From positions 1-42,519 of the forward strand of contig CALSCP010001837.1 of assembly GCA_943704425.1 (NCBI GenBank): a DNA stretch of 42,519 nt, read 5' to 3'. Positions 5,286 to 41,275 of this stretch are shown here, in pieces. Source of the DNA: Ministeria vibrans ATCC 50519 (taxonomy: Eukaryota; Protista; Filasterea). The notes beneath the pieces are model-generated. The model saw only the letters and a program-made list of their open reading frames with translations. It was not told the DNA's origin and made no database searches. The first letter of the stretch is position 1. Every line of letters starts with the position of its first letter. A program made the position numbers and the translations under genes.

Positions 5286-7573
5286 TCACTTGGTCTTTTT
5301 CTGCACAAAGGTCGATGACTTGGTGCCACTACGGGGCTGAGTGCTGAGACGCGGCGCCTTCTTTAGCTTGGGCTCCTCAATGCCCTCGGCCAACTGCGAG
5401 AAGGCCGTTGCCGCAGTACGCTTCTTGTCCTTGCCGTCCTTGCTACCCTTACCCGCTGCTCCGCTTCCTCCTCCGCTGCCCGCAAAGAAGCTGCTCGATG
5501 CTTGCGCGTAGTCAAACGCCGCAATGGGTTGCGTCAGCCCCTTGGCCTTGGCCAACATTCGCTTTTCGCGTCTCCGTCGCTTCCCACTGCCACTCCCAGA
5601 CCCAACACCTTCCTCTGTCTCCATCTCCACACCCACGTCCGCCGACCCAACCTCTTCCACTTCCTCTTCATGCTTCTTCTCCTTCTTCTCCTTCGTGTCG
5701 TCCTCCTGCACCACAACGACACTCTCCATCGGCGGCACCTCTTTGTTGTGCTGTGCATCTCCCACCACAATGCGCTCGGCCGCAAGTGGCTCAAACAGTC
5801 GCACAGGAAACGACGCAAACACTTGTGCCACAAGTGCCTTCACACGCTGTGCCTCCTCCCCTTCCCTCTGATTCTCCTTCTCCTTCTTCCCAGCGCCAGC
5901 ACCACCAAAAGCGGTAGCAAGGCCGCTGTTTGGCTGCGCCAGACGCGCCTCCTCGACAGTCAGCACAGAGGGCACATTGGTAAAACGCGTGGGTACAATA
6001 CGTGAAGGCACTGTGGTCGTTGTGTGGCCGTCGCTGAGTTTTGCTGCAGCTGCTGCGACTGCTACTGCACTATTTGCGGTTGTGGTTGTACTTGTCGCGG
6101 TGGTCGCTGTAGTTTCTGCAAGGACGTCGTGTGCAGTTGCGGCGGCGCGTCGGGCATCGCCGATGAGTGCCATGAGCGTCATGACGTTGAGGCGGACAAG
6201 AGGTGGGGTCGGCGTGCAGCAGGCAAGCAGCGAAACGACCGACGAGGGCATGGTCTCGGCAATGCGCACAAGCATGTGACGTGGCAACACGTAATGCAGC
6301 GACTCGTCTTCGTCGCGAGCCGTGGCGTCACGCCAGTCCCACAGGGCGTGCAGCGCCAGCATCTGTTCGCGACGCGCATGCATTGGCGCGGGAATACCCT
6401 TTTCACACAGGGCCGCGTCGTACGGCTCCTTCTCGTATCGCTTGAGGCACAATTCGGTGCTGCGACGCCACACCTCCTCGAGCAGGTTGAAGCCGACGGA
6501 GGAGGAGCTGCGCGCACACAATTCGTTGCGCAGACGGTCGTACACGTAAAGCAGGTAGTGCGTGTCCTCCTGGGCGTAGCGCGCCATTTCGGTGGGCAGT
6601 GGACGCACACGCCAGTCGGCCAGCTGGTACTTCTTGTCAGCGTTGACGCCGCAGTAGTGCGCAAGAAGGTGGGCGAGCGAGTAGGAAGGAAAGGCGAGTA
6701 CGCGCGTGGCCTGGCCCGTGTCGAACACGTTGACGAGATACAGCCCAAAGTCACGCTGGAGCCAGACAATGTCTGAGTCGCAGCCATGGAGCACCTTGGT
6801 GATGGTTGGCGACGTAAAGACGGGCTGCAGCAGATGCATGTGTTCGCGCAGGGCAATCGTGTCGACGAGGAAGTCGGCAGTGCGCGTGCTCAACTGCATC
6901 AGACAGACAAAGCCCTGGAAGGAACGGTAGCTGTGGTTTTCGAGGTCCACTGCAATTTCATGTGCCAGCTCAATTTGACGCACGCAGTCGACGAGTGCCT
7001 CGAGAGTGTCGACAAAGGTACACACGGCGTGTGCAAGAGGCGTGTAGAGAGTCTCCTGAACGGGCGAAAGAACGCTGTCGGGTGCCGTGAAGGCACGCAG
7101 CTCCGCCTCGTACGGGTGGGGAATGCTCATGAGCACCGACGGTGTGTCGGCTGCAAGCCCCAGTGTGCTCTCAAGGTGGGCCCGCAGCGCGGGCGACATG
7201 GTTGACGACTGCAATGGAATCGCGTGTTGCGTCGACGTCTCTGCATTTGTGTCCCCTTCTGCTGTCGCGCCCGCCTCATTGGCCTCGTGCTGCAGGCGAA
7301 AGACATCGGCAAGCGGCTCAGTCGCGTTGGGCTTGGCGAATATGCGCGGAATAAACGGCGACAAGCGGCTGTTGTCGATACGATCACGAAACTCAAGTTG
7401 GGGTCGTCGAATGTTACGTGCTTGCATGAGCGAAAAGGAGCCGGACTGCTTCTTGCTCGATGCCGGACTCTGCGTGACAACCATCTGGACATTCGACGAC
7501 GACGACTTTGACGTGGACGGGGTTGACGCAGCTGCGGCACCGCTGCTCGCAACGGGAAGCTAGAGGACGCGTG

Positions 7574-9732: not shown

Positions 9733-11621
9733 AAACTACAACCATCCCGGCGGTTAGCAAATCATCAGTGGCTCCGCCGAAGCGATCGAGCACGCCTCCT
9801 GAGCGTGTGTCAGCGCCCAAAGACGTCGTTGATGATGAACCTGTATCGTTGGTGCCCGTATGAATATTATTGTGTCGCGATCTGCCTCATCCGTATATGT
9901 CTTGTCTACCAGCACACGTCGATTGCAAAGCTCTTTGAAGACTTGCGGACGCGTAAACTCAGTGGCACGGCGGCCCTCGACGCCTTTGTGCGTTTTATTG
10001 CGCCTCTCAACAAACCGCATCAGGCAATCATGTTCAAGATACTCGACCGTTCCCTGAAAATCCGTTGCTCTGTCGCCACCATCAATCAAGTACCAAAAGA
10101 AAACGGAACAGAGGGAAGAGAGAACGAAAGAGGGAAGAGAGAAGAGAGAAAAGAGAAACAATGAGATGGAAAGAAACAAGACTGAAGAGAGACGATGGAG
10201 AAAGATGCAACGTGACGGAGAGAGAATGTAAAAGCTAATCAAATGTGCAAATAGGCAATTCCAATGACGGTGCCTGAATTTCGAGTGGCATTGGCGCGAA
10301 CGTTCTCGATAGGACTACTCTCATCCGGCGAGGGCGACTGGTATGTGTCGCGCAAGATTGACGGAGTGCGTGCAGTGTGCTTTGTACAGGCAGGACGAGT
10401 GGAATTTCGTACACGGACGGGACGACCGATTTCGACGGAGCTGATGGAGCGCAGTGGGATTGTGGGAGAGATTGTGCGTGTATGTGGAGCTTCCGGTGGT
10501 GCGGACGGCATTGTGTTGGATGGTGAGCTGTGGGTGGCTGGTGACGCACGTGATGCTGCCGACGACTTTAGCGCGGTCGCGTCGTTGATTCGACGCAAGT
10601 TTGTGAAAGAAGAAGAGAGAGAGGAGGAAGAGGGAGGGGAAGAGGCACAAACGAAGAGGAGGAAGAAGAATAAGACGAAAAAGGGGACGGCGAAGAAGGA
10701 GAGCGGCGAGGAAATGGCACTGGTGGAGCGGAGCATTGGGGGATTGCGTTTTGCGGTGTTTGATATGTTGACACCTAGTGAGTTTGAGCAGGCCAAGAGC
10801 CGACGTAATTTGTCGACGCGACTCAAGGCACTACGCCAACTGTTGGGAGGGCCAGAAGAAGAAGAAGAAAAAGCAGCAGCAGCGGGAGCACAAAGAAAAG
10901 TAACGGCACTGGGAATGGAGCGAATGAAGGAGCGGAGTGTAGGCGAGGTGGAACAGTGGCTGGCTCGTGCAGATGGGCTCGGGTGGGAGGGCGTCATGCT
11001 GCGCCGCGACGCTTCCTATCTTGGCCAGCGCTGGTATGCTCTGGCTCTCTCTCATTCTGTTTCTCTCTCTATCACTTTGTTTCTTTCCGTACTTTCTCTC
11101 TCTATTGTTTGTTTCTCTCTCGCTCTCTATCACTTTGTTTCTCTCTCTCTATCACTTTGTTTCTTTCCCGCTTCTTTCTCTCTCTCTTAGACATCTTTGT
11201 TTTGTTGTTTCTTTTCTTTTCTTTTTCTCTCTGTTCTTTCTCCTCATTTATACTTTATTCTCTGTGTAGTTCTGATTTGCTCAAGGTGAAACGGTTTCAT
11301 GACACTGAGCTGCGTGTGTTGCGCGTGCAGGTGGGAAGCATGCGCAAGGTGAACCCGGAGACGCATCTAGACGAAGAGCACACGGGAATCATGACCAACT
11401 GTGTTGTTGACTACGGTGGCATCGAGGTCTCTGTTGGCTCGGGCTTTACCTTTGCCCAGCGCGTTCGTTTTGGGCGCCATCCCGAGCAGCTTGTGGGCAA
11501 GCAGATTACCGTGCAGTACTTTGCGGAGTCCGTGACGCGCGGTCCGAACGACGAGCGCATCGTCTCCTTGCGTTTTCCCACTGTGAAGTATGTATATAGT
11601 GACAATGATCGGAATGAATGA
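9327..11621 (+). CDS. ATP-dependent DNA ligase of phage/T4-like type, 5 exons, about 585 aa
   Basis: Exons 9327-9605, 9672-9842, 9913-10089, 10255-11033, 11270-11621 join in frame. Motif I SRKIDGVRA, III VLDGEL, IIIa FAVFDML, IV WEGVMLR, V DLLKVK, OB-fold VGSGFT and motif VI SLRFPT. Confidence 0.92.
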
Positions 11622-11689
11622 GTAAAGGAAAGTTCGATGTACTTCTAAACATTTTTCACTTTTACTTCATTTTAATTTGCACTACCTGT

Positions 11690-12202
11690 ATGTCTTGGAA
11701 CCCCGGCCCGTACGGCACCGACGCCCACCTGTTCGGCATGGCGAACAACGGTGAAAACGACGAGGAGTCGTCGAGTGGCAGCTCGTCGTCCGATGACTCG
11801 TCCGACGACTCGTCAGGCTCCTCCAGCTCGTCCAGCAGCGACGACAGCGGCAGCGAAACGGATGATTCGAGCGACTCGAGCAACAGTTCGACCGCCGGAT
11901 CGTCGACGCGGCGCGAAAAGCAGCTGAAACGTCAGTTGCTCGCCGCTCACACGCAACTTGCCATCGTCAACGCCCAGGAACAAGCTCGGAGGCAGCTTGA
12001 ACTTCAGAACACCGAAATGCTGCAGCAGCAGCAGCAGCAGCAAATGTTGTATGCGTCCAATGCCGTTGGTAAGGCGCCAAAAAGGGGCCGTCCCAAAAAG
12101 GACGCCAAAGCACCCAAAGCTCCTCGAGTCCCACGCGGCGCTCCCAAGGGACCACGTGCCCCCAAAGCGCCGCGATCGCGCAAGGGTCCAACCAAGAAGG
12201 CC

Positions 12203-12250
<48 letters not shown>

Positions 12251-14674
12251 TCCACGACATCATCTTCAACTGTGCTTCTGGCACCTGCGGATATCTATAC
12301 ACCGGCCAGCTACGTGCCCGATCCCGCATTTGGCGTCGCTCCAAACGCCGTTCCTTTCTCTGCAACTCCAGTAGAGGCGCCAGCAGCGCCCGTTGCGGAG
12401 GATCACACGCCTCTCATCGTCGACATGTCGGACATTGTCTCGTCTGTGTCTGCTGCCGTCGACACCAACTCGACAACGGTGGTTCCCACAAAAGCGGAGC
12501 CTACCACCGCAACAGCTACAACTGTAACAACGGCGATTTCGGAGGCTGCAACACCCGCACTGGAGAAGACTGTCGAGACCGTCGAGCAGGCTGACAATGT
12601 TGATGTTCAAAAAACGGTCCCTGCTCTAGTGGAAACGCGTGCTCTGACACCCTCCCCGACCCCAATTCTCCCTCCTTCTCCCCCGTTACAACAACAACAA
12701 CGGCAGCAGACGACGACGAGCGACCCTGTCGTCACCCCCACCATTCCAACACAGACTGTTCGCAAGGCACCCAAAACTCCGACAGCTCTATCTCCTGCAG
12801 CTGCACGTGGGTCCGATCCTGCTCCCACCCCTGCGACCCCCGTCAAACCAGCAGATCAGCACTACTATGACCCGCCCAGCGTGGAGATGGCTCCGGGCAG
12901 CATCCACACGGGCATGAAGCTCGAAGCATGGGACGGCACCGAATGGTGGACGGCCGTTGCCAGGCATGTCGACCGCTCGGCGACCCGCGTCACCGTGCAC
13001 TTCAACTACTGGAACGACACTCACGACACCACAGTGGTGCTTCCGTCAGCTTATGTGCGTGTGCCCAACGGCCGTGCGCGCAACGGCCCTAACAACTCGC
13101 GTCAGTCGCAGTCGCACAAAAAGAAGCCCGCTAAGACACCCGCGAAGCGTTTTCAGGAAGCATGTGTCTTTGGCACCCTTGCCACTGTTCGCAAGCAACT
13201 CGACAAGGGCACAGCCGCCGACCCGCTTATTCTCTCCGGCGATCCCGTCGCCATGCGTGACCCTACTCCTCTCTTGCTTGCCATCTACAATGTCAGAGAG
13301 CCCCTTGTTGCTCTTCTTATCGAACGCGGTGCTGATATCTCTGTCATCGGTACCCTCCAGGGCGATGGTGGCCCCTTCCCCGAGGCCGATATCGCCTGCA
13401 TTGCACCCGTTGAGCTTGCCGTGCTCATCCGCGATCATTTTGCCGACCACGAGACGTTCGGTCCAGCCAGTGTCGCCATCTGTGAACACCTCGCTCGCGC
13501 ACTCAACATCAGCCCAGACGAGCTCCGACCTCGCGACCCCTCTGTCGTGCGCGTGCCTCCACCCTTGCCTGAGAAAGACGACGAGGAAGAAGGGCAAGGT
13601 CAACCCAAGTCTGCCCCCGCTCCTTTAGTTGCTGCTGCTGCTGCTGCTGCTGCTACTACTGCTGCTACTGTTGCCGATGGTGGTACTGCTGCTTCAAGTG
13701 ACGCGAAAGACTCGTCGACTGTGTTTGCTTTGCGTTCTCGCTCCTCTCGCAAACGCAGTCGACATTCAAGCACCCGTCGTCGTGATGCCCCGCCACCGCA
13801 CTTGCCGCTGTACATTCGCTCTGTTTCCCTGCGTTCTGGCGTGCCATCGTCATCAGCGTCGGCTGTGCGTGTTCCTATTGATCTTTTGGGCCCGTTTTCA
13901 ACCGAGAACGCTGTGGATGCGTTGCTTGAGCGTGCTACGCGTGAGCTTGGCAGCAGTGAGCCCATCGCGGCGTTTCGTGACAGCACAGGCGCGCGCGTCA
14001 CTGACACGCGTCTCATGCGTGACGGTGAGACGCTGACGGCGCTCACACACGCCCAGCTGAGCGCAGACGCAGATGGCGATACAGTGATGGCGGATGATGC
14101 GCTGTCAACACTCCAGTCGCGATTGCGACCCGTCTGTGCGCCTCTCGCTCCCGTCGTTCCTCTGCCGCCTCACCATACAGCGGCACTTGCCTTCTTCTCG
14201 CAGAACATTGCTTCCACAGCGACTCCCGAGGCGCTGGCTCATCTGTCACAGCAGCTGGAGCAGTCACTGCGCGAACACCACGGCGCCAGTGACGACGGCG
14301 AGGAGGATGTGCACGACAACGCAAGCGAGAAGGATGGCGATGCCACGCGGTACAAGTACAACGAAGACGACGACGTTGACGTCGACGATCTTGACGACGA
14401 GTTTGACGACGACGACGATGATGCGCTGGATGAGACCAGTGTGCGAGGAAGGAAGAAGAAGAAGCGCCGTCGCACGACAGGCAGTGGCGCGAGTGCAAGT
14501 GTGAGTGGCGGTCGCAGGGACAGTCGAGCGAAGCGCAAGAGGGATGCGTCGTCGTCGACCACGTCGGGTGCAAAGCGTGCTCGAAAGTCACTGGACGACG
14601 GTGCGAAGAATATCTCGCCTGCGTGGCAGAACTTGTGGAACGAGCGGTATGACAAGTGACATTATCTCTTTTTT

Positions 14675-15533: not shown

Positions 15534-16674
15534 ATGGCTGACGATGTAAGAGACCAGATTGCTCCTTCTTCGATGCATAACACGCCCGTTGGCTCTTGTT
15601 TCAGCGACTCTTGTGCGGCGTGGACATTTCGTCTCCTCATGAGGACATGGCCGGTCTCCTTGCCGAGTACGTCTCTTCCCCCATGCGTCTCTTGTGCTGT
15701 ACTTTGTGTTTTGCGACCAGCGTCACAGTCTGAAAAGGACGAAAAATGGCTTTTTCTGCGAATGACACGATTTTTTTTTTTTTTTTTCCTATCTTTCAGG
15801 TGGACTGGTGATGAAAACACGAGTATCTTTGATTACGTGGTGATGCCGCTGATGAAGGACACGTTCCGTCTGGAGAACGACGCGATTGGCGACATACAGC
15901 CGGTGTCGTCGGATTTGGCGCTGCCGTCGGCGCAGTGGACGCGCTTGGTGGTGGGGCGTCCGAGCGGGTGGATCGCGCTGGACGATGCGGCGCTGAGTGC
16001 GGACGTGCTGCGCGCTCACGAGACGGCGCTTGCCAAGGAGTACATGTGGGCAGTACACTTGAGTCTGCCCTGCTTGATTGTGCCGCTTACGACGCGTCGG
16101 TGCGCCAACACGGCGCGCAATGTTCGCGCACTCATGTTGGAACATGCGCATGCGTCCATGAGTGTGTGGATGCAAGTGCCACTCACCAGCAGCGACGCCG
16201 ACGACGACACGTGGACGTGGTGGAACACAATGCGTACCCTTTGCGACCAACCACGCTCGCTCGGTGTTGCGCTCGTGCTCACATCGGACCTTCCAGCGGC
16301 GGCACTCTCTGCACGCTGGTACGGCGAGCCACTCAAAGGTGTCATTGTGCCAACGGGTGTCTTCACCAGCAACAGCAAAGGCTTTCCCGTACTCAGCAAG
16401 GCACACCAGAACTTTTTGCGCCCGCTTTTCCGCCTCGGCATCCAGCTCATCGTGAGCGACGTGGACGCGTCCAGCACGCGCGGCAACCGTGAGCTTGCCT
16501 ACCTCCACCATCTCTTCGACACCCGTCCTCCCCTGGGAGACGTCGAGCGCTTTGCCCGCGGCTACGAAGACTACCTGCAAAGCCCTCTCCAGCCTCTCAT
16601 GGACAATCTCGACTCGGCAACGTACGAGACCTTTGAGCGCGATCCCTACAAATACGCTGCTTACGAAACGGTAA

Positions 16675-16710
<36 letters not shown>

Positions 16711-17892
16711 GTTGGACAGAGAGAGACAGAGAGAGATAGTGAGAGACAGAGAGAAACAAAGAAAGAGAGAGAGATAGAGGTAATAAATGAAGACACGTCA
16801 GCTGACAATATGCGAGTAGGCGATATATCAAGCGTTGTTGGACCGAGTCAAGGCGAGTGAAAAAGACACGACGACAGTTATTGTGATGGTGGTGGGTGCG
16901 GGACGAGGGCCGCTGGTACAGGCTGCACTGCACGCCACACGCAAGGTACACTCAAGCACACACAATTCCACACAATCCCGCACAAGCACACACAATCACA
17001 TCACAAACATACATATCATTTTGTTTCTCTCTCTATAATCTATTTATTTATGGAACACGCTTGCTCTCACTTTGAATTTTTACTTACGCACCGGTTTCAT
17101 CCACTTGTTGTGCAGGCAGAGAGGCGGACGCGCGTGTTTGCGGTGGAGAAGAACCCCAATGCACTTGTGACGCTGCAAGGGCGCAATGCGCGCGAGTGGG
17201 GCGGCCAGGTGACGATTGTGGCGTCGGACATGCGCGAGTGGCGCTCCAACGGCGGTGTACTTGCCGACATTGTCGTGTCGGAGCTACTTGGCTCGTTTGG
17301 CGACAATGAATTGTCGCCCGAGTGTCTCGACGGCGCAGCGGCGTTCATGCAGCCCGACGCCATCAGCATCCCCGTCTCCTACACCTCCTTTTTTGCGCCC
17401 GTTCTGTCGACACGCCTGCACCAGGAGGCCGCGTCGGGTTCCGCCCCGGCCGCCCTTGAGACCCCCTACGTCGTCATGCTGCGCAGTGCGCATCTGCTGG
17501 CAACTCCTCAACCCTGTTTCACCTTCCACCATCCCAATGAGCGTGCCGCTAGCTCTGGCGTCGTCAACAACGACCGACACACCTCCCTCTCCTTTGCCAT
17601 TGACGCTCCCGCCATGTGCCATGGATTTGCTGGGTTTTTCGAGTCCGTCCTCTACGGCAATGTCCTCATGAGCATTCTCCCGTCCACCCACTCACCCGGC
17701 ATGTTCTCCTGGTTTCCCATCTATTTCCCTCTCGTCACGCCCGTCTCCCTTGCCAAGGACTCCACCCTCGATGTGTCCCTCTGGCGTCGCTCCGACCGCA
17801 AACGTGTCTGGTACGAATGGGCCCTCACCGGTCCTCTGGTCCTCTCCAAGATCCACAATGCCGATGGCAAATCAAGTGCTATTGGTCTCTAA
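15534..17892 (+). CDS. PRMT5: Protein arginine N-methyltransferase 5 (5 exons)
   Basis: TIM-barrel motifs WAVHLSLP, RWYGEPLK and NSKGFPVLSKAHQ. Also GYEDYLQSPLQPLMDNLDSATYETFERDPYKY, SAM loop VVGAGRGPLV, AVEKNPNA, double-E loop VSELLGSFGDNELSPECLDG and SPGMFSWFPIYFP. Confidence 0.97.
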
Positions 17893-18115: not shown

Positions 18116-20381
18116 ATGCTCTTCCCACATCGTCTGCTTCTTGCCGCTGCTGTAGTCACGCTGGCCGCAGCAGCCCAGCTGAGCTTCGTATGTCGCCCCG
18201 ACAACGACATTTTCGCGTTGCTGTCACAACAACATTCGTTTGCGCGATACGACAGCGTTGCCGAGGCTCTCACGCACACGCAGTCGGGCAGTCTGATGGT
18301 TCTTGCCGATGGCTATCCTACCCAGAACACACTGATGTCGTTGGCTCAGATTGAGACTGCGCGCCATCAGAATGTGGCTGTCTTTCTCGAAGCACCCGCT
18401 GCGCTCCCGCGGGCCTCGTGCGCCCCGTTGGCCGCTGCCGAAGTGTACCATCGACTGGTGGTCAATCGGACTGCGGGTATTGGCGGTCTCGAGCCGCTGT
18501 CACTGCTCATGGCGCAGGGAGCGTGGTTTGTTGACATTCGCGAGTGCGACACCTGCCTGACGCGCTCCGCCCTTGTCTATGCCAAGGTTGCCGGCGTCGA
18601 CACTGCCACGTACGGTATGCCCCCGGACGCGCTACTGAACCCCGTTCTGTTTGACCACGGGAGCGCCGAGGCGACGGATGCCCCCGAGCTATTTCTTGTC
18701 TCCGCCATCAAGTTGTCCGTGCCCGTCTCGTCACGTTTCGAGCCGGTCGCTGCCTGGCAGAGCCTCTGGGCTTACATTCTTACGCGCATGTCTAACGGTA
18801 CCATCACGGAGCTTCCCACACTCCCTCAGCTTGCGCACCCCTACAAGGCGGATCCCCGTGCCAACGTGTCCGTTGACGACGAGCGCCAGTCATTTGTGCG
18901 TGCCTCCCAATGGCTCCATCGCCTCACACGCACGGGAAACGACAGCTGTCCTGCGCCCTACTTGAAGGAAGGCGCGGCAACTGTCACTCCCTTGTGTATG
19001 TTTGAAGGCTACAGTTCCTTGATGGACTACAATGGCACACAGCAGCTGGCGACTGGCGTACGCATGGACTGCACCCTTGAGACTGCCATGGTTTTTGCAT
19101 TGCGTGCGGCCCTTGTCGACGGCCAGGGACGTGATGATGCCGGCCGTCTTCTCGACTACGCATTTTTTCAATCGGTGGCGCAACAGGGAGCGCGTGCTGA
19201 CGAGAACGCACCGCAATACGGTCTGTTAACGTGGGGCACAAGTTCGCCAGCTCTCACCGATGCCTTCTATGGCGACGACAACGCTCGTGCCTTGCTAGGT
19301 GCTATCACGGCGAGCGCAGCGTTGCAGCGTGCCGACTGGGACGTATCCATTTTAAGGGGGGTCCTTGCCAACGTACGCACTGCTTCTCAGAGTGGATTTC
19401 GTCCGGGACGCATCAATGCACCCGACATTGATAAACTTGGCTGGCGCCACTATTTCTCGGCTAACTACACCTTCACGACGGTACCGTCGCCTCAGCCGCA
19501 CTACCAAGCGCGTCTCTGGTACGTCTACCTGTGGACGTACGCCCGGACACGTCTTACTGTGCTGCGTGACCGGGCTCTCCAAGGCATTACTGCCACCATG
19601 GAAGCCTTTCCCGCCTGGCCCTGCACCGAATACGCCGTACGATTTGAGAAAGAAAATTAGGTGACTCTTTTTTTAACATAATTATATATATACATGTATC
19701 TTATTGTAGAGCGAAGAATACGGGGCGATGATTCATGTGCTTGCATGGCTTGTGCGCGTCGAACCTGCTGTGCCAGTGTACCGCGCGTGGTTGCGTCAGG
19801 CGAGTGAAGCGTATCTCGCACGACAACAGACGGTCGGGGGCTGTGTACAGGAGTCGCTGGGCACGGTGCGCTGCTCAGACCCACCACCGGCGTCCAACAA
19901 GGCGTATGGCAGTGCTGAGGCGCCGATCACACAGAGCGACAATGACACCATTGCCGATATGCTCTACTCGAATAACTTTGCGCTGATTGGACTGCTTGAG
20001 GCGTATCACGCGACGGAAGGTGACGATTTTTATGGCAAGGCACTAGACGCACTCGTAGGCTGTGTGGTACGTGTTCAGGCGACGAGTGTTTCTCGGGAGG
20101 AACTGGATGGCGGGTGGATGCGCGGTTGGGACTACGCACGCAATGACTACTGGGGCAGCTCGTCGGACGCCGGCTGGGGGGTGTGGAGCATGGAGAGTGG
20201 GTGGACGACGACATGGATTGCCACTACGCTAGCCATACGACAGTTCTACAATTCGCCCGATCACGATCGATCGCTGTGGGCATTTACTCAGGAGCGCAGT
20301 TCGATTGCTCCGGGACTCGCACGCACCGTGTGTCAGACCTTCTTTAAGGATGATCTGGCGTCGATTTGTGATCAAGATTGA
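18116..20381 (+). CDS. Secreted protein of unknown function, probable (alpha/alpha)-barrel glycosidase-like, bacterial-like; 2 exons, about 730 aa
   Basis: Signal peptide ([14 protein letters not shown]). One intron 19637-19709 joins the two ORFs in frame (..CTEYA|[17 protein letters not shown]). Motifs [35 protein letters not shown] and the Trp-rich [30 protein letters not shown]. The product call is inference. Confidence 0.7.
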
Positions 20382-23680: not shown

Positions 23681-28632
<4,952 letters not shown>

Positions 28633-28720: not shown

Positions 28721-29809
28721 TTACACCGTGGAATGATCAGAGTTGTGCGCAATTTCGTGTATCTGGGCAATGGCAGTGACATAGAGGCCCATAAGGGCAG
28801 TGATGGATGTCCCTTCGCTCGTTTGGGCGGCGTAGTCCGACTCAGTGTCTGCGTGTGAGCGATAGGCAATGAAGACACCGTCGCTCTCGACGACCCATCG
28901 GCGAATGTCGCTGAAGGGCACGCAGCTGAGTTCTCGTCGGGTGCGTTTGTCGAGGCGCGTGAGGCCGCGCGGCGAGATACACAGGAGGCGTGGAACTAGA
29001 CGTTGCAGTTGGGGGTCGCTCTCGCGCACAGCAAACTCCGTTTGGAAGTGACGTGGAAAGAGCAGAAGGAAGGTGGCAAGGAAACGCATTTGCGCAGTGG
29101 CAATGTCAAGTGCGGCGTCGCCATGGAATTTGCAACAGAGCGCGGCAACTCGGTCGCGTACGTGAGGGATGTCCAACCCGCCTGGAGGAAGGACGCTCTG
29201 CAGCTCCCGGCGTGTGGGGACAAAGTCGGCGGGCATCTCCTTGGCATAGTCGACCAGAAGCGTAAGGGATGCAAGTACAACGGCGTGCGGTTCGTCCATG
29301 GGCGTGTCGCCGCGTATGATGCACGTTTGCGCCTCGGCAAAGAGAACGTCTCGCTGAGCGTGCTTGACCGTCAACTGCGCGACGCTCTGGAAAAGCCGTT
29401 GGACAAAAGGCGGGGGCTGCAGGCCAGCGGTGTCGAAGAGCATGACAAGCTGTCTGTACGAGTGTTTTCGCGTCGACATGAAGCGGAGGGCGCGCGTACG
29501 CGCGACAAGTTCAAATGTGGCACGATCGTAGAATCGAAGAATGTCGTGCAGGCGGTGACAGGTCGCCTCCAGCTGTAACAGAGACCAGGCATCGCCATCG
29601 CGCGCTAGAGGCAAACATATGGCAATGATCAGCTCGGGTGGGAGCTGCAGGAGACGCGAGCTTGCGACGCCAGCGGACAGTTTCAACCCCTGCGGTGGCC
29701 TTCGCTCCTGCTGGACGCGCTCATCGAGCTCCTGGAGAGCCCGATAGCGTCGTAGTGCACGCTTCCTTCTCAACGGACTCGAACATACGCTCGAGTAACA
29801 CGAGCCCAT
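28721..29809 (-). CDS. N-acylated F-box protein with talin-head FERM F2-F3 (PTB-like) domains, intronless, 362 aa
   Basis: N-terminus MGSCYSSVC. F-box LLQLPPELIIAICLPL..LLQLEATCHRLHDIL. Talin F2-like DVLFAEAQTCIIRGDTPMDEPHAVVLASL. Talin F3-like LVPRLLCISPRGLTRLDKRTRRELSCVPFSDIRRW..YAAQTSEGTSITALMGLYV. Confidence 0.82.
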   Translation of the reverse strand: MGSCYSSVCSSPLRRKRALRRYRALQELDERVQQERRPPQGLKLSAGVASSRLLQLPPELIIAICLPLARDGDAWSLLQLEATCHRLHDILRFYDRATFELVARTRALRFMSTRKHSYRQLVMLFDTAGLQPPPFVQRLFQSVAQLTVKHAQRDVLFAEAQTCIIRGDTPMDEPHAVVLASLTLLVDYAKEMPADFVPTRRELQSVLPPGGLDIPHVRDRVAALCCKFHGDAALDIATAQMRFLATFLLLFPRHFQTEFAVRESDPQLQRLVPRLLCISPRGLTRLDKRTRRELSCVPFSDIRRWVVESDGVFIAYRSHADTESDYAAQTSEGTSITALMGLYVTAIAQIHEIAHNSDHSTV

Positions 29810-32148: not shown

Positions 32149-35100
32149 TCAAAAAATTATGCTTCGCGCACCTTCTTGGACCCCTTGGAACACAGGCAAG
32201 TCCATTTGTGCCATTGGAACGCGTCGCTTTTGGCGCGGCGGACGACGCACCAGCTCCTCCTCCTCTTCCTCCTCCTCCTCATCATCATGTGCGCCCTCAT
32301 CCGACGACTCTTCAATGCCGCGCTTTGATACAATTGTCTTGGAGACACTCAAGCTGCCACCTGCGCTACCTTGTGTCGTCTTTGATCGCTTGCGTGCGCT
32401 CGTCGGTGTCTTGCTCTTGCCCGTTTTCTTCTTAGTCGAGGTTGTTGACAAGCTCGACAGGCTGAGTGACAGCGGCTGAGTAAGCTTACCAAACCGTACG
32501 CGGTCCTCGTCCTCGTCATCTTCGTCGTCCTCCTCCTCCTCGTCCTCGTCCTCCTCTTCCTCTTCGTCAATCTCGTCGTCTTCTTCGGGCGCCTCCTCGA
32601 ATAGACGCTTTCGACTGCTCGGCTTGGTAGGCGATGCTGTGGGTCTGGTCTGGGCCAGACGTGCCGAAAGAGCGCTCGCAGTCTTGCGACGCTTCTCCGC
32701 GAGTTCTTGGCGACGACGTCCTGTCAGCGAGGCACTTGCAGCACTGCGTTTCGTCGTCGTCACGCGTGCACGACGCGGTGCCTTGACCTTCTTGGTAGCG
32801 CCCGTTGCACTGGGGCTGCCCGAGCTTGGCTTCGCGCCACCCTCGAGGTGCACACAGTATTCTTCGGCGCGTGTCACGTCAACTGAGCGCGCCGGCTCCT
32901 TGGCGAGCAACTCGCGAGCGTACTTCCATACGAGCGCCTTGTCCTCCTGCTTGACGCGTCCCGAAAACTCATCGAGAACACGGAAGAAGGGCAGACGCTC
33001 CTCGACCTGTTCATCACTGGGCGTCTCGGTGCGCCCACCAAGCACCCACTCAATGCCACGACGATGAAAGACAATCATGGCCTTGCGTTGTGCATCCGAC
33101 ATGGTGACACCACACGACTGAGCAAGACGATGCGCAAGGGCCACCACAGTGGAGGTGTCGCCGTTTGCCTCGCTAAATGACGCCTGCAGCGCTGCGAGCA
33201 TTTGCGTAGTGGTGCCCGCCAAGCTCGTCTCACGCATTTTGGCCAGGAGTACCTTGAGAATCGCTTTGTAACGGTAGGACAGCGTGACGTACGCCCGGAA
33301 CAGCGACACGGCGGCACTCAGCGGAATCGCATTGTTACCCACAAGCTTGCACAAGCACAGGAGGGTCCGACGTCGTTCGCCCAGTGACAACGACTGTGTC
33401 CACGTCGACTTCTCCTCAGCAAGGTCCTCCACAGTTCCATCCGCGTCCGCTTGCTCGGGCATCTGGTCCCACTCGTCGCTGACGCCGTCGTCCGACAGCA
33501 CATAGGGAGCATCGTCGTCGTCGGCTCCGTCCTCTGTTGACTCAAGCGACAAAGCATGCTCTTGCTCAGGCAGCACCACCAACTCCTCGACAAAGGCGAC
33601 GCACTCGTCAATCACCGATTGAGACGCAATAAAATGCAGCCTTTCGAGTGTGGGCGCTGAAAAAATGAGCAGGAAATCCGACAGAGTCGCAAAGAGGTAG
33701 GCACGCAGACGCGACGGGAGTTGAGGCGAGCGTACAAATGACGTGAGTTGGTGCACAAAGAGATCACGGCGCTTAATAATCGTGTCGGCATCCACACTGG
33801 ACGACGAGGGCAAGAGGCGCACAATGTTGACAAAGACAATGCGCACCGCGGGCAACAACAACACCGAGTGGAGCGACTGAGCGTCCGCAAAGGCTGCGAG
33901 CAGACGCGACGTGGGCTCGTAGGCGGCGTCGAGGCTGCGGTGTCGTTGAAGTGCTTCGATCCGCTTGAGCGCAACGTGCACCGGGTAAAGAGCGTCGTGC
34001 ATTCGACCCGCGGCAGCATTGTCGTCGAGCAAACGATCAACACGCGCACCCAAGGCGTGAGTGTTCAGCAGTTCACTCACAAGCTCGTCCATGGCAATGG
34101 TCACGTCCCCCTCCAACTCGTCGTGCTCCAACATGAGTGACATGGCGCGTGTGCTCGCATCAATCACGTCGTCCTGCCCAAAGGTACTGGCCGCTGTGCG
34201 CAAGTGATTCACCAGCGGCGCCAGGTGACCGCGCAGGCGGTGAGTGGTGTACACGTGAAAATCAAAGGCGTGCACAATGGAGGCGAGGCGCGCCATTTTG
34301 TCGCCGTCGGCAGCAAAGCGATCCATGAGCGACGGCAGCTGCTTGGCAAAGTGAACGGTGAGCGTTTCGCGTGCCTCCTTGGCGTCCGCGCGAGCCTTGG
34401 GTGTCGACTGATCGCTTACGGCACGATGAACGGCCGCCTCGAGCATGGCAAGAAGTGTGGCCTCGTGACGATCTGTCTCTGCATTGTTCAAGAGGGCGTG
34501 CGTCAGCGCTGGCCAGTCGGTGAAAGATGCCTCGCAGCGCTTCCACATGCTATCGACAAGTACGGCAGCGTAGCCAATGGGAAGGAGACTCTCATCGTCG
34601 GCGCTTGCCTCGTCACTCACCAGACTCACATGGTCACCACAAAACCAGCGGACAATGGCATGCAGTGTTCGCAAATGGCCCTTGTCAATGGAAGTGACAG
34701 CAGACATGGCGCGCTTGCCTTTGCCTGTGCTCGCCTTTCCCCTTTGTCCGCCTCGTCGCCTCGTGCCATCATCATCGCCATCGTTGTCGTCGTCGTCGTC
34801 GTCGTCGTCGTCGACGGCGCTTTTTGGGCCGTCGTCGTTGTTCAACTCGATGAGGTGCGTGTGCAAAAACTGGCCGGCTGCAAGACGGCAGGGAGCGTCG
34901 TCGGGTCGCGTAAACATTTGCGTGGCAGTTCGGTCAATGATGAGCGAAACGAGGCTGTCGTCGTCGTCATCGAGGAGACGGGCGCGCGCGAGACAGGTTA
35001 CGAGACTGACGGCACGCGCAGCCACGTCGCTGCTGACATCGTCCACCATTTCGGTCATGCGCTTCTTGAAGCGCTCTGTGAGAGCCTGCAGCGACTGCAC

Positions 35101-36408
35101 AAAACTTGGGTTGCTGTACAGACGCAAGAGTCCTTCGACGGCCGCGAGTCGCACATGGGGCTCCTTGTCAAAGAGCGACCAGGCGATGTACTTGAGCTTG
35201 GTGTCGCGTGTCTGGCCACTCGTGTCGTCGCTGTCGTGCAGAAAGCGCTGGGGACAGTGTTCGAGCCAGACGCAGAGCTCGGCTATGCACTCGGCGCGAA
35301 TGTTGACAAAGAAGTCGCGGTAGCGGGTGAGAAAAATGTTCTTGAAAATGTCGCAAATGAAGCCCTTGGGCTCGTCGTCGGTCGCGTCTGGGTTCCACAG
35401 TGCACGCTGCATTGTCTGAAGGCGCTCAAGAAGCGCATCAAGATCCTTGGCGCGTGCACCCTTGGCGGACGCTCGCTTGCGCTCTGTAGCTGAAATTTGC
35501 TCGTCAATGTCGACGAGCTCATCGACCAGTGCTGTGTGCAGCTTCATGGCGGCAAAAGTGGCAGTGTGACGGACGGCGCGATGAGGCGCGGACGCAAGAA
35601 GACCAAGCCAAGTAATGACGGTGGTCATGAGACGACCGCTTGCGAGGTGGTCGCCGCAACTTGAAAAGAGTCGCTGCACAAAGTCGGCAAAGTTGTTGCG
35701 AAACTTCTTGTACTCCTTGGGCGCCGTCATGACAATGGGATAGGCGTCGCCCGAAGCAAGACTCAGACAGAGCTCCTTGATGAACGGCGTAATGTTGTCG
35801 CTGCACACCATGCTCTCGGTAACCACATCCTGACAACCGGCGCTGCGCGTGAAGAATGTCACCAACTTGGCGAGCGCTGCCACCGGGTTTCGCTCGTAGC
35901 TGTCTACCCATTCACACACTACCGCCTTGATGGCCGAACGACCACGCAGCACCACATCAAACAGATCGGCGGGCGCGGCGCTCTTGGTACGTGTCGTCGT
36001 TGCCTTCTTCTTCTTTGTGCGCGTCGTCTGCTCCTCGTCATCTTCCTCATCCCCAATCTCGTCGGCGTCGTCTTCATCATCATCATCATCATCGTCGTCG
36101 TCGTCGTCGTCGTCGTCATCCTCCTCCTCTGCATCACTGCTGTTGGTCGCCTCAAACGTGTTGTCATCTTCTGCTGCTGCGTCGCTGATGTCCTCGACGC
36201 GTTTCGCCGAAACGCGTTTCTTTGGCGTCGCTGTCTTGGCTGGACTCTTAGTCTACACACACACACACACACAGGTCAGTGTATGTGCACCAATTCACAC
36301 AGTAGAAAGATGTCAGACACAGGGGGGTGAGAGACAGGGAGAGGAGGAGGGGAGGGGGAAGGACGAGTGTTTCGTTGTTGAAACTTTTTTTTTCTTTGTT
36401 GGTACCAT
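32149..36408 (-). CDS. STAG: Cohesin subunit STAG/SA/Scc3
   Basis: STAG domain YPIV..KKFRNNF..HRAVRHTATFAAMKLHTALV. SCD motif RYRD..IRAECIAELCVWL..KLKYIAWSLFDKEPHVRL. HEAT-like body and an acidic/basic tail. Probable start ATG at 36408-36406 is followed directly by a GT donor and spliced to a large exon 36252-32149 (M|TKSPAKTATPKK). Confidence 0.93.
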
Positions 36409-36801
36409 CGATTGTTCACTCTCGTGAGCTGCCGACGAGTGCCTATACGAGAGAGGAGAGACAATTCCAAGCAAGTCAGTCAGGGGGTAGTGCAAAACGA
36501 GCGGCGGCGACAGTGGTGGTGAGACAGAAACGAAAACACGGCGGAAACACGAAATTTCGGCGCCAAAACACCGAAACAAAAAGCCAAAACGTCAAAACGA
36601 GTGCTTGAGAGTTCAAAGGGAGTGGAACGAGTTGTCCTCACGCCGGGTTGTCCTACCGAGTGGCCCGCGTTGCGCGCTTTGTGCCCGGCATGATCAGAAA
36701 GAGAGCGAAAAAAAAATGAACTCGAGACTCATCTTCAAATCTATGAATAAAAGTAAAAAAAAGTTTTTAAGACTTATTTTTACTGTGGCGATTGCACCAG
36801 T

Positions 36802-37792
36802 ATGCCGCATCTTTCCTTCAAAGGATTTGTGGCGACGGTAGAGCGAGCTCAAGAGTACGCACTCGTCTGGGTTTGGTTTGCGTTGCTCAACGCACTCGTG
36901 AATGCCCTGTAGCATATTCGAAGCGGCTCGCACAGGGCGCTGTCTCATCTTCCATGAACGCCCTCCGCTGGCGGACGTTGCGCCAGGCTGGGGTTTCGTG
37001 TTTGACAATGAGCGGTAAGAGGAACCACCCGTCACTTTGCTCGTGCCACAGCGCCCAGCCGCCCGTCTGCTCCACCGCATCCGATTATCGGCCTTTCACA
37101 CGCCCTTGCTTTGTAGAAGCGGCATCAAGCGCTGGACCGACAGTCGGTACGTTGGTGGTTTTTTTTTTCTTTTTTTTTTTTTTTTTGTGTGATATTTTTG
37201 AGGTCACACCCAAACCCCAAGTGGGGCCGTTCAACTCGTCGTTGCGAATCCTAGAGCTGCTAGGATTCTGTGTGTGAACCTTACCGTGGGCTGCAGCGTG
37301 TCTGCGGGTGCAGCCCATCCCCTGTGTGACGTTTTGATTTGTTATCGTATCTTTCTGTCACTCCGCTGCTTCCGTGCCTTCCTCGCATACGGATGCACCC
37401 ACTACGCATATTGGCTAGCCGCCTGCGGACAGGCACTCCCTCTCGTCAACAGGGCGTTCCCATGACCCATTTTTTCACACACCAAAAAAAAAAAAAAAGA
37501 CAAAGAAAAAATGTATTGCCCCTGACACACACGAAGGGCGCCCCTGTGCTCTTTTTGCATCGCATACATTGCAAAACCTTATTGTATTACCCGCAGTTGC
37601 AGCGATTCCGTCTTTACATGCGTCTTTCCCTTGGGCGGACGCAAACGGAACCTCACACGCAAAACCCATCGACCCCATTGCGTTCTCCCTGTTTTCGCCG
37701 TCGCCCTCTGTCGCCTCTCTTCGACGGCTTTCCCTCTATCGTGTCGTGGCTCTTGTGGATCACCAACCTATACATATGTCACGTCTCATGTG

Positions 37793-37823
<31 letters not shown>

Positions 37824-40800
37824 TTTTTTTTGTCTCACGTACAAAAACAAACTTCTTCTCTTGACTGTTTTTTCTTTTTTCCTCTTTTTCCCTCCCTCTC
37901 TGTAGCTATTGGGGTCACACTCAACACCCCACTCCAAAATTCTCACTCTACCTTGAAACATTCTCATTGGGCACGGCAAAAGTGACCAAGCCCCGCGGAT
38001 TACGCAAGGTATTCCACAGAGACACACTCAATGCGACACAAACATTCACACAATAATAATATTAATATTAATTATTTTTGATGTTCTTCACCCGCTCCTC
38101 TTCTCAGATCGTCGTTCAGGATCTGTTCAGCTCGTTGCGCCTCATCAACTACTTTACTGACGAATACTACCGCGAGGAGAACACACTTACCATTTACACT
38201 TGTGTTGACGAAGGGGATGCGCAGCGCAACATCATCACTTATCAAGCAGAGTCAGTTCTTGTGTTTGTGTGTGTGTGTCTTGTCATTTTTTTCAACTTTG
38301 TTTTCACCCCTTTTCTACAGCCAAGCGAGAGCCGTTGTGGCGCGAAACGAACCGGTGCGAGAGACACCCGTCACTGCGTTCGATCTGGGAGTGTACATCG
38401 ACCGCAAAACTGGAGGGGGTCGCTTATTGAACAGCGCTTCGCCTCAGCGCAATATTTCTCACGAGTCGTCTCACCACAGCGGTCTCCCGCCTCGTCAGGC
38501 TGCTACGAAATGCCGTAAACGTTTTATTGAGCCGTCTCCGTCGCTTTCGTTGTCAGAACGCGGCTCCTCTGTTGAATCCGCGTCAAACTTCCAATACACG
38601 CGTCCGTCACACGCGGTGGCTACTGTTACCACCACTACTGCGACCTCCGACTCCCGTACCCCCTCTCGTTGCCGTTCTGGTTCTCAAGAGGAGTTGCGTC
38701 AGCAGCAGCAGCAGCAACGACAACATCCATCGCGTATGACAAACACGCGCCAATCTCTCTCACCCAGCGAACTCGACGAGCAACACATCGTTCAAGAGCG
38801 AATCCAGGCAGTATACTACCGATCTCTCCTACACCAACTTGCGGCCCCGCCCCTAAGTACGCCCTCCGCAGCCGCATCTGCCTCCGCGTCGGCTACCTTG
38901 CCCACTGCACGCGCCGGCAACCACATCGAGTATCCTGTCGAGTTCCCCAGCGACTGTGAGCCCAATCTCCTTGCCATGATTGGCACCGACAAGAGCTTTC
39001 CCACGATCATCCCAGGCACCCAGCCCTTTCTCACTCCATCCCATCCACTATCACATCCGCAACAACAACAACAACAACAACAACAGCAAGCTTCTTCACC
39101 TCACACCGTACCCATCACCACGGCTATTCCTCCGTCTCGCACCAAAAAGACCAAGAACGATCACAACGATGCCAATCGTCAACCCACCACTGCACTCTTA
39201 CAGGTTCGTCGCAACTGCATTGGCAATGCTCTTACTCACTCACCAAAACACTCCTTTGTCTTCTTCTTTCTTCTTTTTAAGGCTGAGCGTAATCCTTCCA
39301 ACGAGAATCATACAATGGAAAAGACCCTCACAACAGACGACATACTCCGTCTTCAGTCCTCCGTACACACATCTTTTGCGAGTTCCTATACCACGTTCAT
39401 CACGACTCACTCTCTTTCTCTTTCTCGTCAGGACTGTCGTGTGCCTATGAAACGTGTACGCTCCAAATCCGACGGAGCCGAGACAATGGTAAACCCAGTT
39501 TTGAAATTTGTCTTCGTCCGTGCTCACACATACACAAACACACACGTTTCTTCAGCCTCGTGTGTCTCCAACTGTGCCTCGCAATGGATCTGGCTCCAAC
39601 AGATCCTACACCATGGAAGATGCGCAGGAGCGCGATCGTGCCTTCATGTATCAATTGCAGGCGTTTTCCCCCGAAGGTTACTTTCTCCGCTCTCGTCACA
39701 CTTCGTCTCCTCAATCTTCTTTTTTTTTCTTCTTTTCTACATTTTTAGAACGACATGTTTTGTTCCAGTACCTTACAGCTCGTATGTCAACCAAACTTAA
39801 TCCTTTCATCGCGTTTTCCTCCATCTCACGTACTTTATATTGCGAAATGACTTGTGTAGAAAATGCCGAGTTTGTGCACGACATGATGTTCCCGGAAGAT
39901 TGCAGTGATGGCGACGACGAGTCAGTGCAGTCAAGCTCGCCACCACTGCCACCACCCATTGTGCATGCACACCTTCAAAGAACTCTTCAGGAGCAGCTGC
40001 ACCAGCCGTCGCCTCCTCCCCAACCCATTCAGTCGCTCAAGTCCCTAGAAATGTCCCAGAGTGCTCCTTCAACGGCCCAGCCCATGCAACTCCAACGTGA
40101 CTCAGCGTCGCCCGGCGTTCCAGTCAGCCCTCCTTCACACAATGGTATGTCCACTACCGACACCGGCGCCGATAATCCTACCACCACCACCACAACGACC
40201 ACAACAACATCGACAACAGCTCCTGTCGCTTCAGCATCGCCTACGACCAGTACCACCTCGACACCCATTTATCCAGAAATGCAGCGAGTCCGTCCTGTTC
40301 GATCTGTCTCCTACTCCTCGCAGGGTGTCCCTGCCGGTACCACTCGTGTCCCTCCGCCGTCTACGGCCGGTACCACTCGTGTCCCTCCGCCGTCTACGGC
40401 CGGTACCACTCGTGTCCCTCCGCCGTCTACGGGCTACTCGTTCAAACACAGTGCCCTGCAAACGCCCTCCGTCGCTCCCAGCTTGCCTGTCCAACTTAAG
40501 ACGGACATTTTCAACTCAATATTGGCCCAACTGGACAGCCCAGCTTCATCTCCTGCAACCGCTTCTCCCTCTGTCGCTCCTGGGTTCTCTCAACAATCGC
40601 CTTTAAATTCATTTTCCAGTACTAAATATCATCGTGTGTCATTTACATTTCTGATTCTGCTTTTCTGAAATTCTGTAGATTTGCGCGCAACTCAGTCACA
40701 ACCTCATTTTGACATGAGCGTCTCCAACCTGCGCTCGGGCGTGTCGTCTCTGTCCGTCCACAGCCCTCAACCCTCCGACGCATATGTCTCGCCGCTTATC

Positions 40801-41025
40801 ATTGGCCCCACCACACGAACGCCTCCCTCCTCCCTCAGCACACACACGTCCTCTCCCACTGCCACGACGTGTATCCCTCCCCCGCGGACACAGGAAACGC
40901 GTTCGCCCAGCCATGGCATTCACACTCTCTCCGGTTCGCGTCACTCCCAATCCCCCACATTTATGTCACGTCACAGCAGCCCCAGTTCCAGCGCAAGTTC
41001 GCCGATTGTCAGTGTTGCCGAGTAA
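36802..41025 (+). CDS. WOPR (Gti1/Pac2, Wor1-like) transcription factor, 12 exons, about 903 aa, with a long Q/S/P/T-rich tail
   Basis: Exons 36802-36854, 36913-37014, 37117-37146, 37906-38008, 38108-38250, 38321-39203, 39282-39362, 39432-39488, 39556-39676, 39749-39781, 39860-40618, 40679-41025. All junctions are GT-AG and phase-consistent. N-terminus: MPHLSFKGFVATVERAQDIFEAARTGRCLIFHERPPLADVAPGWGFVFDNERSGIKRWTDSRYWGHTQHPTPKFSLYLETFSLGTAKVTKPRGLRKIVVQDLFSSLRLINYF. The 3' exon boundaries are less certain. Confidence 0.85.
40333..40431 (+). repeat. Perfect 33-nt coding tandem repeat x3 (AGTTRVPPPST)
   Basis: GCCGGTACCACTCGTGTCCCTCCGCCGTCTACG repeated three times without mismatch. Confidence 0.97.
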
Positions 41026-41275
41026 CTAAGTAAACAAACAACGGAAACGAATATACAATTTTAACGTAATTATTATAATAATAATAATAATTATTATTAT
41101 TATTATTATTATTATTATAATATTTAAGTGCCTTTCAGCATCGCGTTTCAGCAACGCCGGCGCGGTCATAGAAAAAGGGCACCGCAAGACGAGTCCAAGT
41201 CTCATCGCAAAATAAACAAACTGATTGAAACGGGAAACAGAATTTTTACTTTTAAATAAACTAGCCGATCTTGCA

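Follow-up and report, generated by a model that had tools for sequence, protein, structure and literature searches.

A WOPR (Gti1/Pac2) family gene divided over short exons in Ministeria vibrans

The 42,519-nucleotide (nt) stretch of DNA analysed here (the window), which is contig CALSCP010001837.1 of the Ministeria vibrans ATCC 50519 assembly GCA_943704425.1, raises the question of whether a filasterean genome can carry a gene for a WOPR (Gti1/Pac2) transcription factor at a site, positions 36802-38250, that contains no long open frame. WOPR papers up to 2026 keep the label 'fungal-specific' for this family (PMC4567300, PMC13729134). An earlier note, made from the letters of the window, had assembled a hidden WOPR domain from five short exons at this site and had placed it in a non-fungal or very early-branching opisthokont. 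Our analysis showed that the gene is real, that it is spliced as predicted, and that it is present in RNA-like sequencing runs. Taking the data together, we regard it as highly probable that the locus is an expressed nuclear gene of 12 exons, the 903-residue product of which begins with a WOPR domain of the holozoan branch and continues into a low-complexity tail rich in S, P, T, and Q.

Gene structure and splicing

The domain is split over five exons of 53, 102, 30, 103, and 143 nt on the forward strand, with GT at every donor, AG at every acceptor, and matching phases, the codons divided between exons being D, R, R, and D. Exon 1 (36802..36854) starts at the ATG at 36802, the first start past an in-frame stop, and encodes MPHLSFKGFVATVERAQ, the beginning of the first conserved region (WOPRa). 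WOPRa continues in exon 2 (36913..37014), the translation of which runs from IFEAARTGRC to PGWGFVFDNE (in full, IFEAARTGRCLIFHERPPLADVAPGWGFVFDNE), and in exon 3 (37117..37146), which supplies SGIKRWTDS with the site KRWTDS. Exon 4 (37906..38008), translated as YWGHTQHPTPKFSLYLETFSLGTAKVTKPRGLRK, holds the end of WOPRa (YWGHTQHPTPKFSLYLE), a linker of 12 residues, and the start of the second region (WOPRb) at RGLRK; exon 5 (38108..38250) carries WOPRb with IVVQDLFSSLRLINYFTDEYY. The motifs F.GFV, GWGFVFDNE, SGIKRWTDS, YWGHTQHP, LYLE, KPRGLRK, and LRLINYF were all found in these translations, and the very short linker that the earlier note had described was confirmed at about 12 residues. The WOPR domain thus made by five short exons occupies the first ~145 residues of the protein, from residue 1 onward.

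The whole gene extends over 36802-41025 on the forward strand and comprises 12 exons, 11 introns, 2709 coding bases, and 903 codons. When the frame was traced exon by exon, it stayed open without an internal stop as far as the TAA at 41023-41025. Exons 6 to 12 (38321-39203, 39282-39362, 39432-39488, 39556-39676, 39749-39781, 39860-40618, and 40679-41025, all on the forward strand) encode the tail, which begins near residue 146 and measures about 756 residues; 46% of these are S, P, T, or Q, and the tail includes poly-Q runs and a 33-nt triplication. No Pfam domain was found in the tail, and neither an EH1 nor a WRPW co-repressor motif occurs in the 903-residue protein. Homologue searches with the exon 6 tail or with the open frame 38205-39797 were blank; the tail is of low complexity, and the length band of the exon 6 query excluded products of 903 residues.

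Evidence for splicing came from assembled contigs of public sequencing runs. The locus is carried by 20 runs in eight studies, four of which were compared with 36500-41200: the RNA-like runs X1, X5, and X6, from three studies, and the DNA run X18. The RNA-like contigs contain the GT..AG joints 36854>36913 (in X1 and X6, the X1 contig beginning at 36792), 37014>37117, 38008>38108, and 38250>38321 in the domain, so that exon 2 has joints on either side, and 39203>39282, 39362>39432, 39488>39556, 39676>39749, 39781>39860, and 40618>40679 in the tail. The DNA run X18, in contrast, follows the genome colinearly through all introns, which rules out a DNA variant as the source of the spliced forms.

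The joint 37146>37906, which the earlier note had singled out for checking, crosses three masked repeats and was derived from contig coordinates rather than aligned directly. In X1 record 3, 25 adapter letters followed by 63, 102, and 30 letters give 220, and the boundary 37905/37906 lies at record position 220/221; the same sum holds in X5 record 15 and X6 record 19, and the 30-letter side of exon 3 is present in all three RNA-like runs. The coordinates, lengths, phases, and motifs of the five-exon assembly therefore stand as proposed, with their joints in three RNA-like runs.

The intron removed at this joint, intron 3 (37147..37905, forward strand), is by far the longest of the gene, measuring 759 nt compared with 58-102 nt for the other ten, and is bordered on either side by long tracts of poly-T and (GT)n. 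Parts of it are covered by RNA-like contigs at about 1.5% of exon depth, colinear and without a single joint inside, and a cassette or poison exon within it was therefore left unsupported. A known RNA in the intron was rejected, as no Rfam family was found anywhere in the window, and the fold of 37200-37470 was only mildly stable (z = -2.3).

Two further features of the runs were observed. In X6, which is labelled as another organism than the DNA run, the spliced gene is the same apart from a few base differences. One of these, a C>T at 36953 in exon 2, would turn His into Tyr in WOPRa; there are eight other difference sites in 36500-41200. These differences were seen at a depth of only about 4 and may reflect a second strain, a close relative, or error. 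In all four runs, the DNA run included, contigs connect 40196 back to 38701 via AGCAGT. Both sites (38701-38723 and 40178-40196) are CAG/CAA repeats, which suggests that the link arose through misassembly of poly-Q coding sequence and does not reflect a rearrangement.

Family membership and relatives

The window gene was compared with the family exon by exon, and the genome (29.7 Mb in 2860 contigs) was searched in six frames with the Pfam model PF09729 (Gti1_Pac2; gathering threshold 23.6 bits). This search missed the window locus itself and found four other loci, L001 (contig C1768), L002 (C2330), L003 (C1986), and L004 (C2426), which brings the WOPR paralogues of the genome to about five, the window gene included. 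L001 scored 50.4 bits (E 3.6e-13), and most of its WOPR domain, beginning at the first strand and reaching as far as the WOPRb motif LRLIAYF, lies in a single exon, whereas the same region is spread over five exons in the window gene. Exons 2, 4, and 5 of the latter align colinearly with L001 residues 40-55, 70-106, and 107-124.

Concerning L001 itself, the intron that follows its WOPR exon is filled at 1389-1716 with a tandem repeat, the units of which resemble GAGAGAGTTCAAGA. Upstream, and in frame with the WOPR domain, some 475 codons stay open and include a long poly-Q run; the domain of L001 may be internal rather than N-terminal.

A separate homologue search with the L001 domain region was blank. 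When 1.84 billion proteins were searched in HMMER with this domain, 26 matches were obtained. The best named ones, in EukProt, came from Corallochytrium, Choanoeca, Pigoraptor (two), Chromosphaera, Hartaetosiga, Syssomonas, and Salpingoeca infusionum, and fungal Gti1/Pac2 proteins ranked below those of holozoans. All ten holozoan relatives tested passed PF09729, at 33.8-92.7 bits. By summed exon BLAST scores, the window gene was nearest to the Pigoraptor protein P0012 (94 bits), followed by P0006 (91) and P0001 (88), a ranking by score that does not imply orthology to P0012.

A holozoan WOPR profile was built from 12 relatives and L001, with the window gene left out. Exon 1 matched it at positions 4-18 (4.1 bits), exon 2 at 21-54 (17.7 bits), exon 3 at 57-65 (10.6 bits), exon 4 at 68-104 (11.0 bits), and exon 5 at 107-143 (16.7 bits). 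The five matches are colinear and abutting, with gaps of two positions that correspond to the split codons, and sum to 60 bits on the holozoan profile, which is not the Pfam model. For every exon, 0 of 1000 shuffles reached the observed score, and when the window was scanned in six frames with the same profile, five of the six best among 2263 stop-free tiles fell in the WOPR locus. The same order was obtained with hhalign for exon 2 (E 1.7e-8, probability 95%), exon 4 (E 1.9e-5), and exon 5 (E 4.3e-4).

The layout of the protein agrees with that of the family, in which WOPRa (about 80 residues) is followed, after a linker of variable length, by WOPRb (about 50 residues) at the N-terminus. Ten columns that are invariant over holozoan and fungal sequences (G, G, RWTD, W, Y, G, and Y in alignments A1/A2) are all kept in the exons. 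Through these profile matches, the paralogue, and the relatives, the suggestion of a WOPR gene concealed by short exons was borne out, and on these indirect but converging lines the window gene is a member of the WOPR (Gti1/Pac2) family. The non-fungal opisthokont host that the earlier note had proposed as one option is likewise upheld, and the holozoan, Pigoraptor-like affinities of the gene are in keeping with Ministeria vibrans.

The known holozoan Gti1/Pac2 proteins in EukProt include those of Pigoraptor chileana (P012189, our P0012), Syssomonas (P0009), Chromosphaera (P0006), Corallochytrium (P0002), and choanoflagellates (P0003, P0007, and P0010). Like the window protein, they have an N-terminal WOPR domain, a short linker (about 12-25 residues), and a long disordered tail, and they share with it the F.G.V start and the motifs PG.G[YF]V[YF]D, RWTD, W....HP, [IL]Y.E, GLRK, and LRL[IV].Y[YF]. 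The window protein differs in having the shortest linker, the longest tail (903 residues in total), and a domain cut by four introns; it also has WGHTQHP and GLRKIV where most of these relatives have WSDSxHPGG and GLRKKT.

Compared with the fungal set, namely Candida Wor1 (PDB 4qtj/4qtk), S. cerevisiae YHR177w (4m8b), Histoplasma Ryp1, S. pombe Gti1/Pac2, and Fusarium Sge1, the window protein likewise has a two-part N-terminal domain followed by a Q-rich tail, and it belongs to the same Pfam family through its relatives and paralogue. Fungal members have WSPSR, GL[IV]KKT, and linkers of 25-100+ residues, whereas the window protein has WGHTQ, GLRKIV, and its 12-residue linker. The earlier note had read this departure from WSPSR and GLxKKT as a hint of altered specificity. 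The replaced motifs are indeed there, but they are partly typical of the clade rather than of this gene, since the holozoan branch overall has W[SG]DSxHPGG at the WSPSR site and a short linker. Moreover, because holozoan relatives without WSPSR pass Pfam, WSPSR and GL[IV]KKT define the fungal branch and not the family.

Structural comparisons were made through proxies. The holozoan-only alignment A2, searched against PDB sequences, matched YHR177W (E 1.4e-23, over both conserved regions) and Wor1 (E 3.2e-21). An AlphaFold2 model of Pigoraptor P0012, taken as a proxy for the window protein, reached a predicted local distance difference test (pLDDT) score of 86-97 over the domain. In Foldseek, this model retrieved only 4m8b and 4qtk/4qtj, at E 1.5e-8 to 6e-7, the next match being at E 0.04, and its template modelling score (TM-score) against 4m8b/4qtk was 0.56-0.65 when normalised to target length. 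The same fold as in fungal WOPR proteins is thus predicted for the nearest relative.

Among the relatives, two WOPR proteins have endings of a kind that was not found in the window protein or at the other loci. Pigoraptor chileana P0005, from a filasterean, ends in FSIENIL (348-354), and Chromosphaera perkinsii P0006, from an ichthyosporean, in FSIESIL (443-449). Both endings, at the very C-terminus, fit the animal EH1 (Groucho-binding) consensus FS[VI]xx[IL][LM] exactly and are conserved across the two lineages. Groucho orthologues and EH1 motifs have been reported in ichthyosporean factors, with the WOPR family unmentioned (Copley 2016, PMC4943189).

Possible function and alternative explanations

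Fungal WOPR function is backed by genetics and structures; for the window protein, the fold, DNA binding, any regulatory role, and any control by protein kinase A (PKA) are predictions by analogy. In fungi, interdigitated halves recognise a short DNA motif with an arginine loop in the minor groove (summarised in PMC4567300, PMC13729134). If the window protein resembles Wor1, Ryp1, and YHR177w, its two conserved halves would probably interlock into one beta-sheet domain, which would read a short DNA motif through an arginine-bearing loop placed in the minor groove. Recruitment of the transcription machinery, or a role in activation, would probably fall to the low-complexity tail. KRWTDS, identical to the putative PKA site of Sge1, Wor1, Ryp1, and Gti1 (PMC2762075), may permit kinase control. 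The gene itself would have been inherited from the opisthokont ancestor as one of about five paralogues.

Several observations weigh against an expressed WOPR factor of this kind. No single exon reaches a Pfam threshold, and the match of exon 5 to DUF7816 is sub-threshold; the pieces of 33, 34, and 47 residues are too short, however, and these misses are therefore no evidence against membership. A fungal-only profile scores well with exon 3 alone (12.2 bits) and is close to zero for exons 2 and 5. The WGHTQHP and GLRKIV motifs differ even from the holozoan consensus, and the window gene is the most divergent WOPR member among those compared. The RNA nature of X1, X5, and X6 is only guessed, and their contigs carry no expression level. 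The window shows no enrichment of the fungal Wor1 core motif TTAAAGTTT (6 matches at one mismatch or fewer, 6.3 being expected), which is absent near the gene, and for want of evidence autoregulation through it was rejected; its chance-level count says little about a divergent member. Finally, our literature search returned no study in which a holozoan WOPR protein had been examined by experiment.

The divergence could mean that the window gene is a neofunctionalised paralogue, in which the fold is kept while sequence-specific binding to DNA has been lost or altered; it might, for example, work together with the other paralogues or compete with them. The replacement of motifs common to other holozoans, the near-zero score on the fungal-only profile outside exon 3, and the room for specialisation that about five paralogues provide would agree with this. 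Nevertheless, the ten invariant columns, RWTD included, are all retained, activating WOPR factors typically have a long Q/S/T/P-rich tail of this kind, and there is no sign that the DNA-contact loop has been lost; we thus consider such a change of function distinctly unlikely. Decay into a copy that is transcribed yet unused, which the same divergence, the very long intron splitting the domain, and the recent 33-nt triplication in a low-complexity tail might suggest, appears very improbable for a gene in which 903 codons in 12 exons form an uninterrupted frame, the phases of 11 introns are correct, the core residues are conserved, and the same spliced form recurs in three studies.

Contamination by a fungus, or recent transfer from one, would be the natural thought for a family that the literature, including a 2026 paper, calls fungal-specific (PMC4567300, PMC13729134). 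It is hardly credible here, as the best relatives are holozoan with fungal-type proteins ranking lower, the gene has 11 introns and sits among host genes (cohesin STAG, a talin-like PTB protein, a P4-ATPase, and PRMT5), the DNA depth at the gene equals that of its flanks, and four paralogues lie on other contigs. An expressed nuclear gene with a WOPR domain of the holozoan branch remains our preferred reading of the locus.

Going beyond that reading, holozoan WOPR proteins might represent an ancestral opisthokont switch of cell identity that was lost in animals, with the divergent Ministeria paralogue, the motifs of which are altered beside the RWTD core, controlling a change of life stage through a non-fungal DNA motif. 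The holozoan branch spans ichthyosporeans to choanoflagellates, and no labelled animal member was present among the sequences seen. The change concerned might be, for example, the aggregation (on which a Nature study appeared in 2026, PMC13366479) or mating recently described for Ministeria vibrans. We offer this proposal tentatively and hold it to be rather unlikely.

Place in the WOPR literature and genomic setting

Capsaspora is a filasterean. The earlier note had expected its finding to push the origin of the family deeper, and had granted that the novelty would fall if the family were already catalogued in the lineage of the host. The deeper origin is not supported and the claim of novelty falls, as Mérényi et al. 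reported Gti1/Pac2 representatives in Capsaspora, Salpingoeca, and Corallochytrium in 2023 (PMC10406608), and catalogued holozoan relatives pass Pfam. The WOPR family was therefore already catalogued in the filasterean lineage. A literature search found no paper that names WOPR together with Holozoa; non-fungal WOPR is thus little known among WOPR workers, yet it is not new.

What the gene adds is an RNA-supported WOPR member in a filasterean-type genome with about five paralogues. It also illustrates that a 30-nt exon combined with a 759-nt intron can conceal a WOPR domain from searches based on open reading frames and on six-frame translation. Intron-rich protists therefore probably have more WOPR genes than the counts show. 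The corrected gene model offers a practical basis for asking whether WOPR factors control cell state in the closest relatives of animals, which would be the first functional work on a non-fungal WOPR protein.

The genomic context of the gene is ordinary for a eukaryotic nucleus. Pfam matches identified an NBR1-like gene with ZZ and N_BRCA1_IG domains (275-2470, reverse strand), an RRP6-like exonuclease with an HRDC domain (5289-7484, reverse), PRMT5 (15534-16736, forward), a P4-type phospholipid flippase (P4-ATPase; 24203-26357, forward), a protein with an IRS-type PTB domain resembling talin F3 (28724-29809, reverse), and cohesin STAG/SCC3 (32152-35955, reverse). The large open frames at 11618-14656 and 18116-19657, both on the forward strand, had no Pfam match at E <= 1e-5. 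The WOPR gene is transcribed divergently from the cohesin STAG/SCC3 gene.

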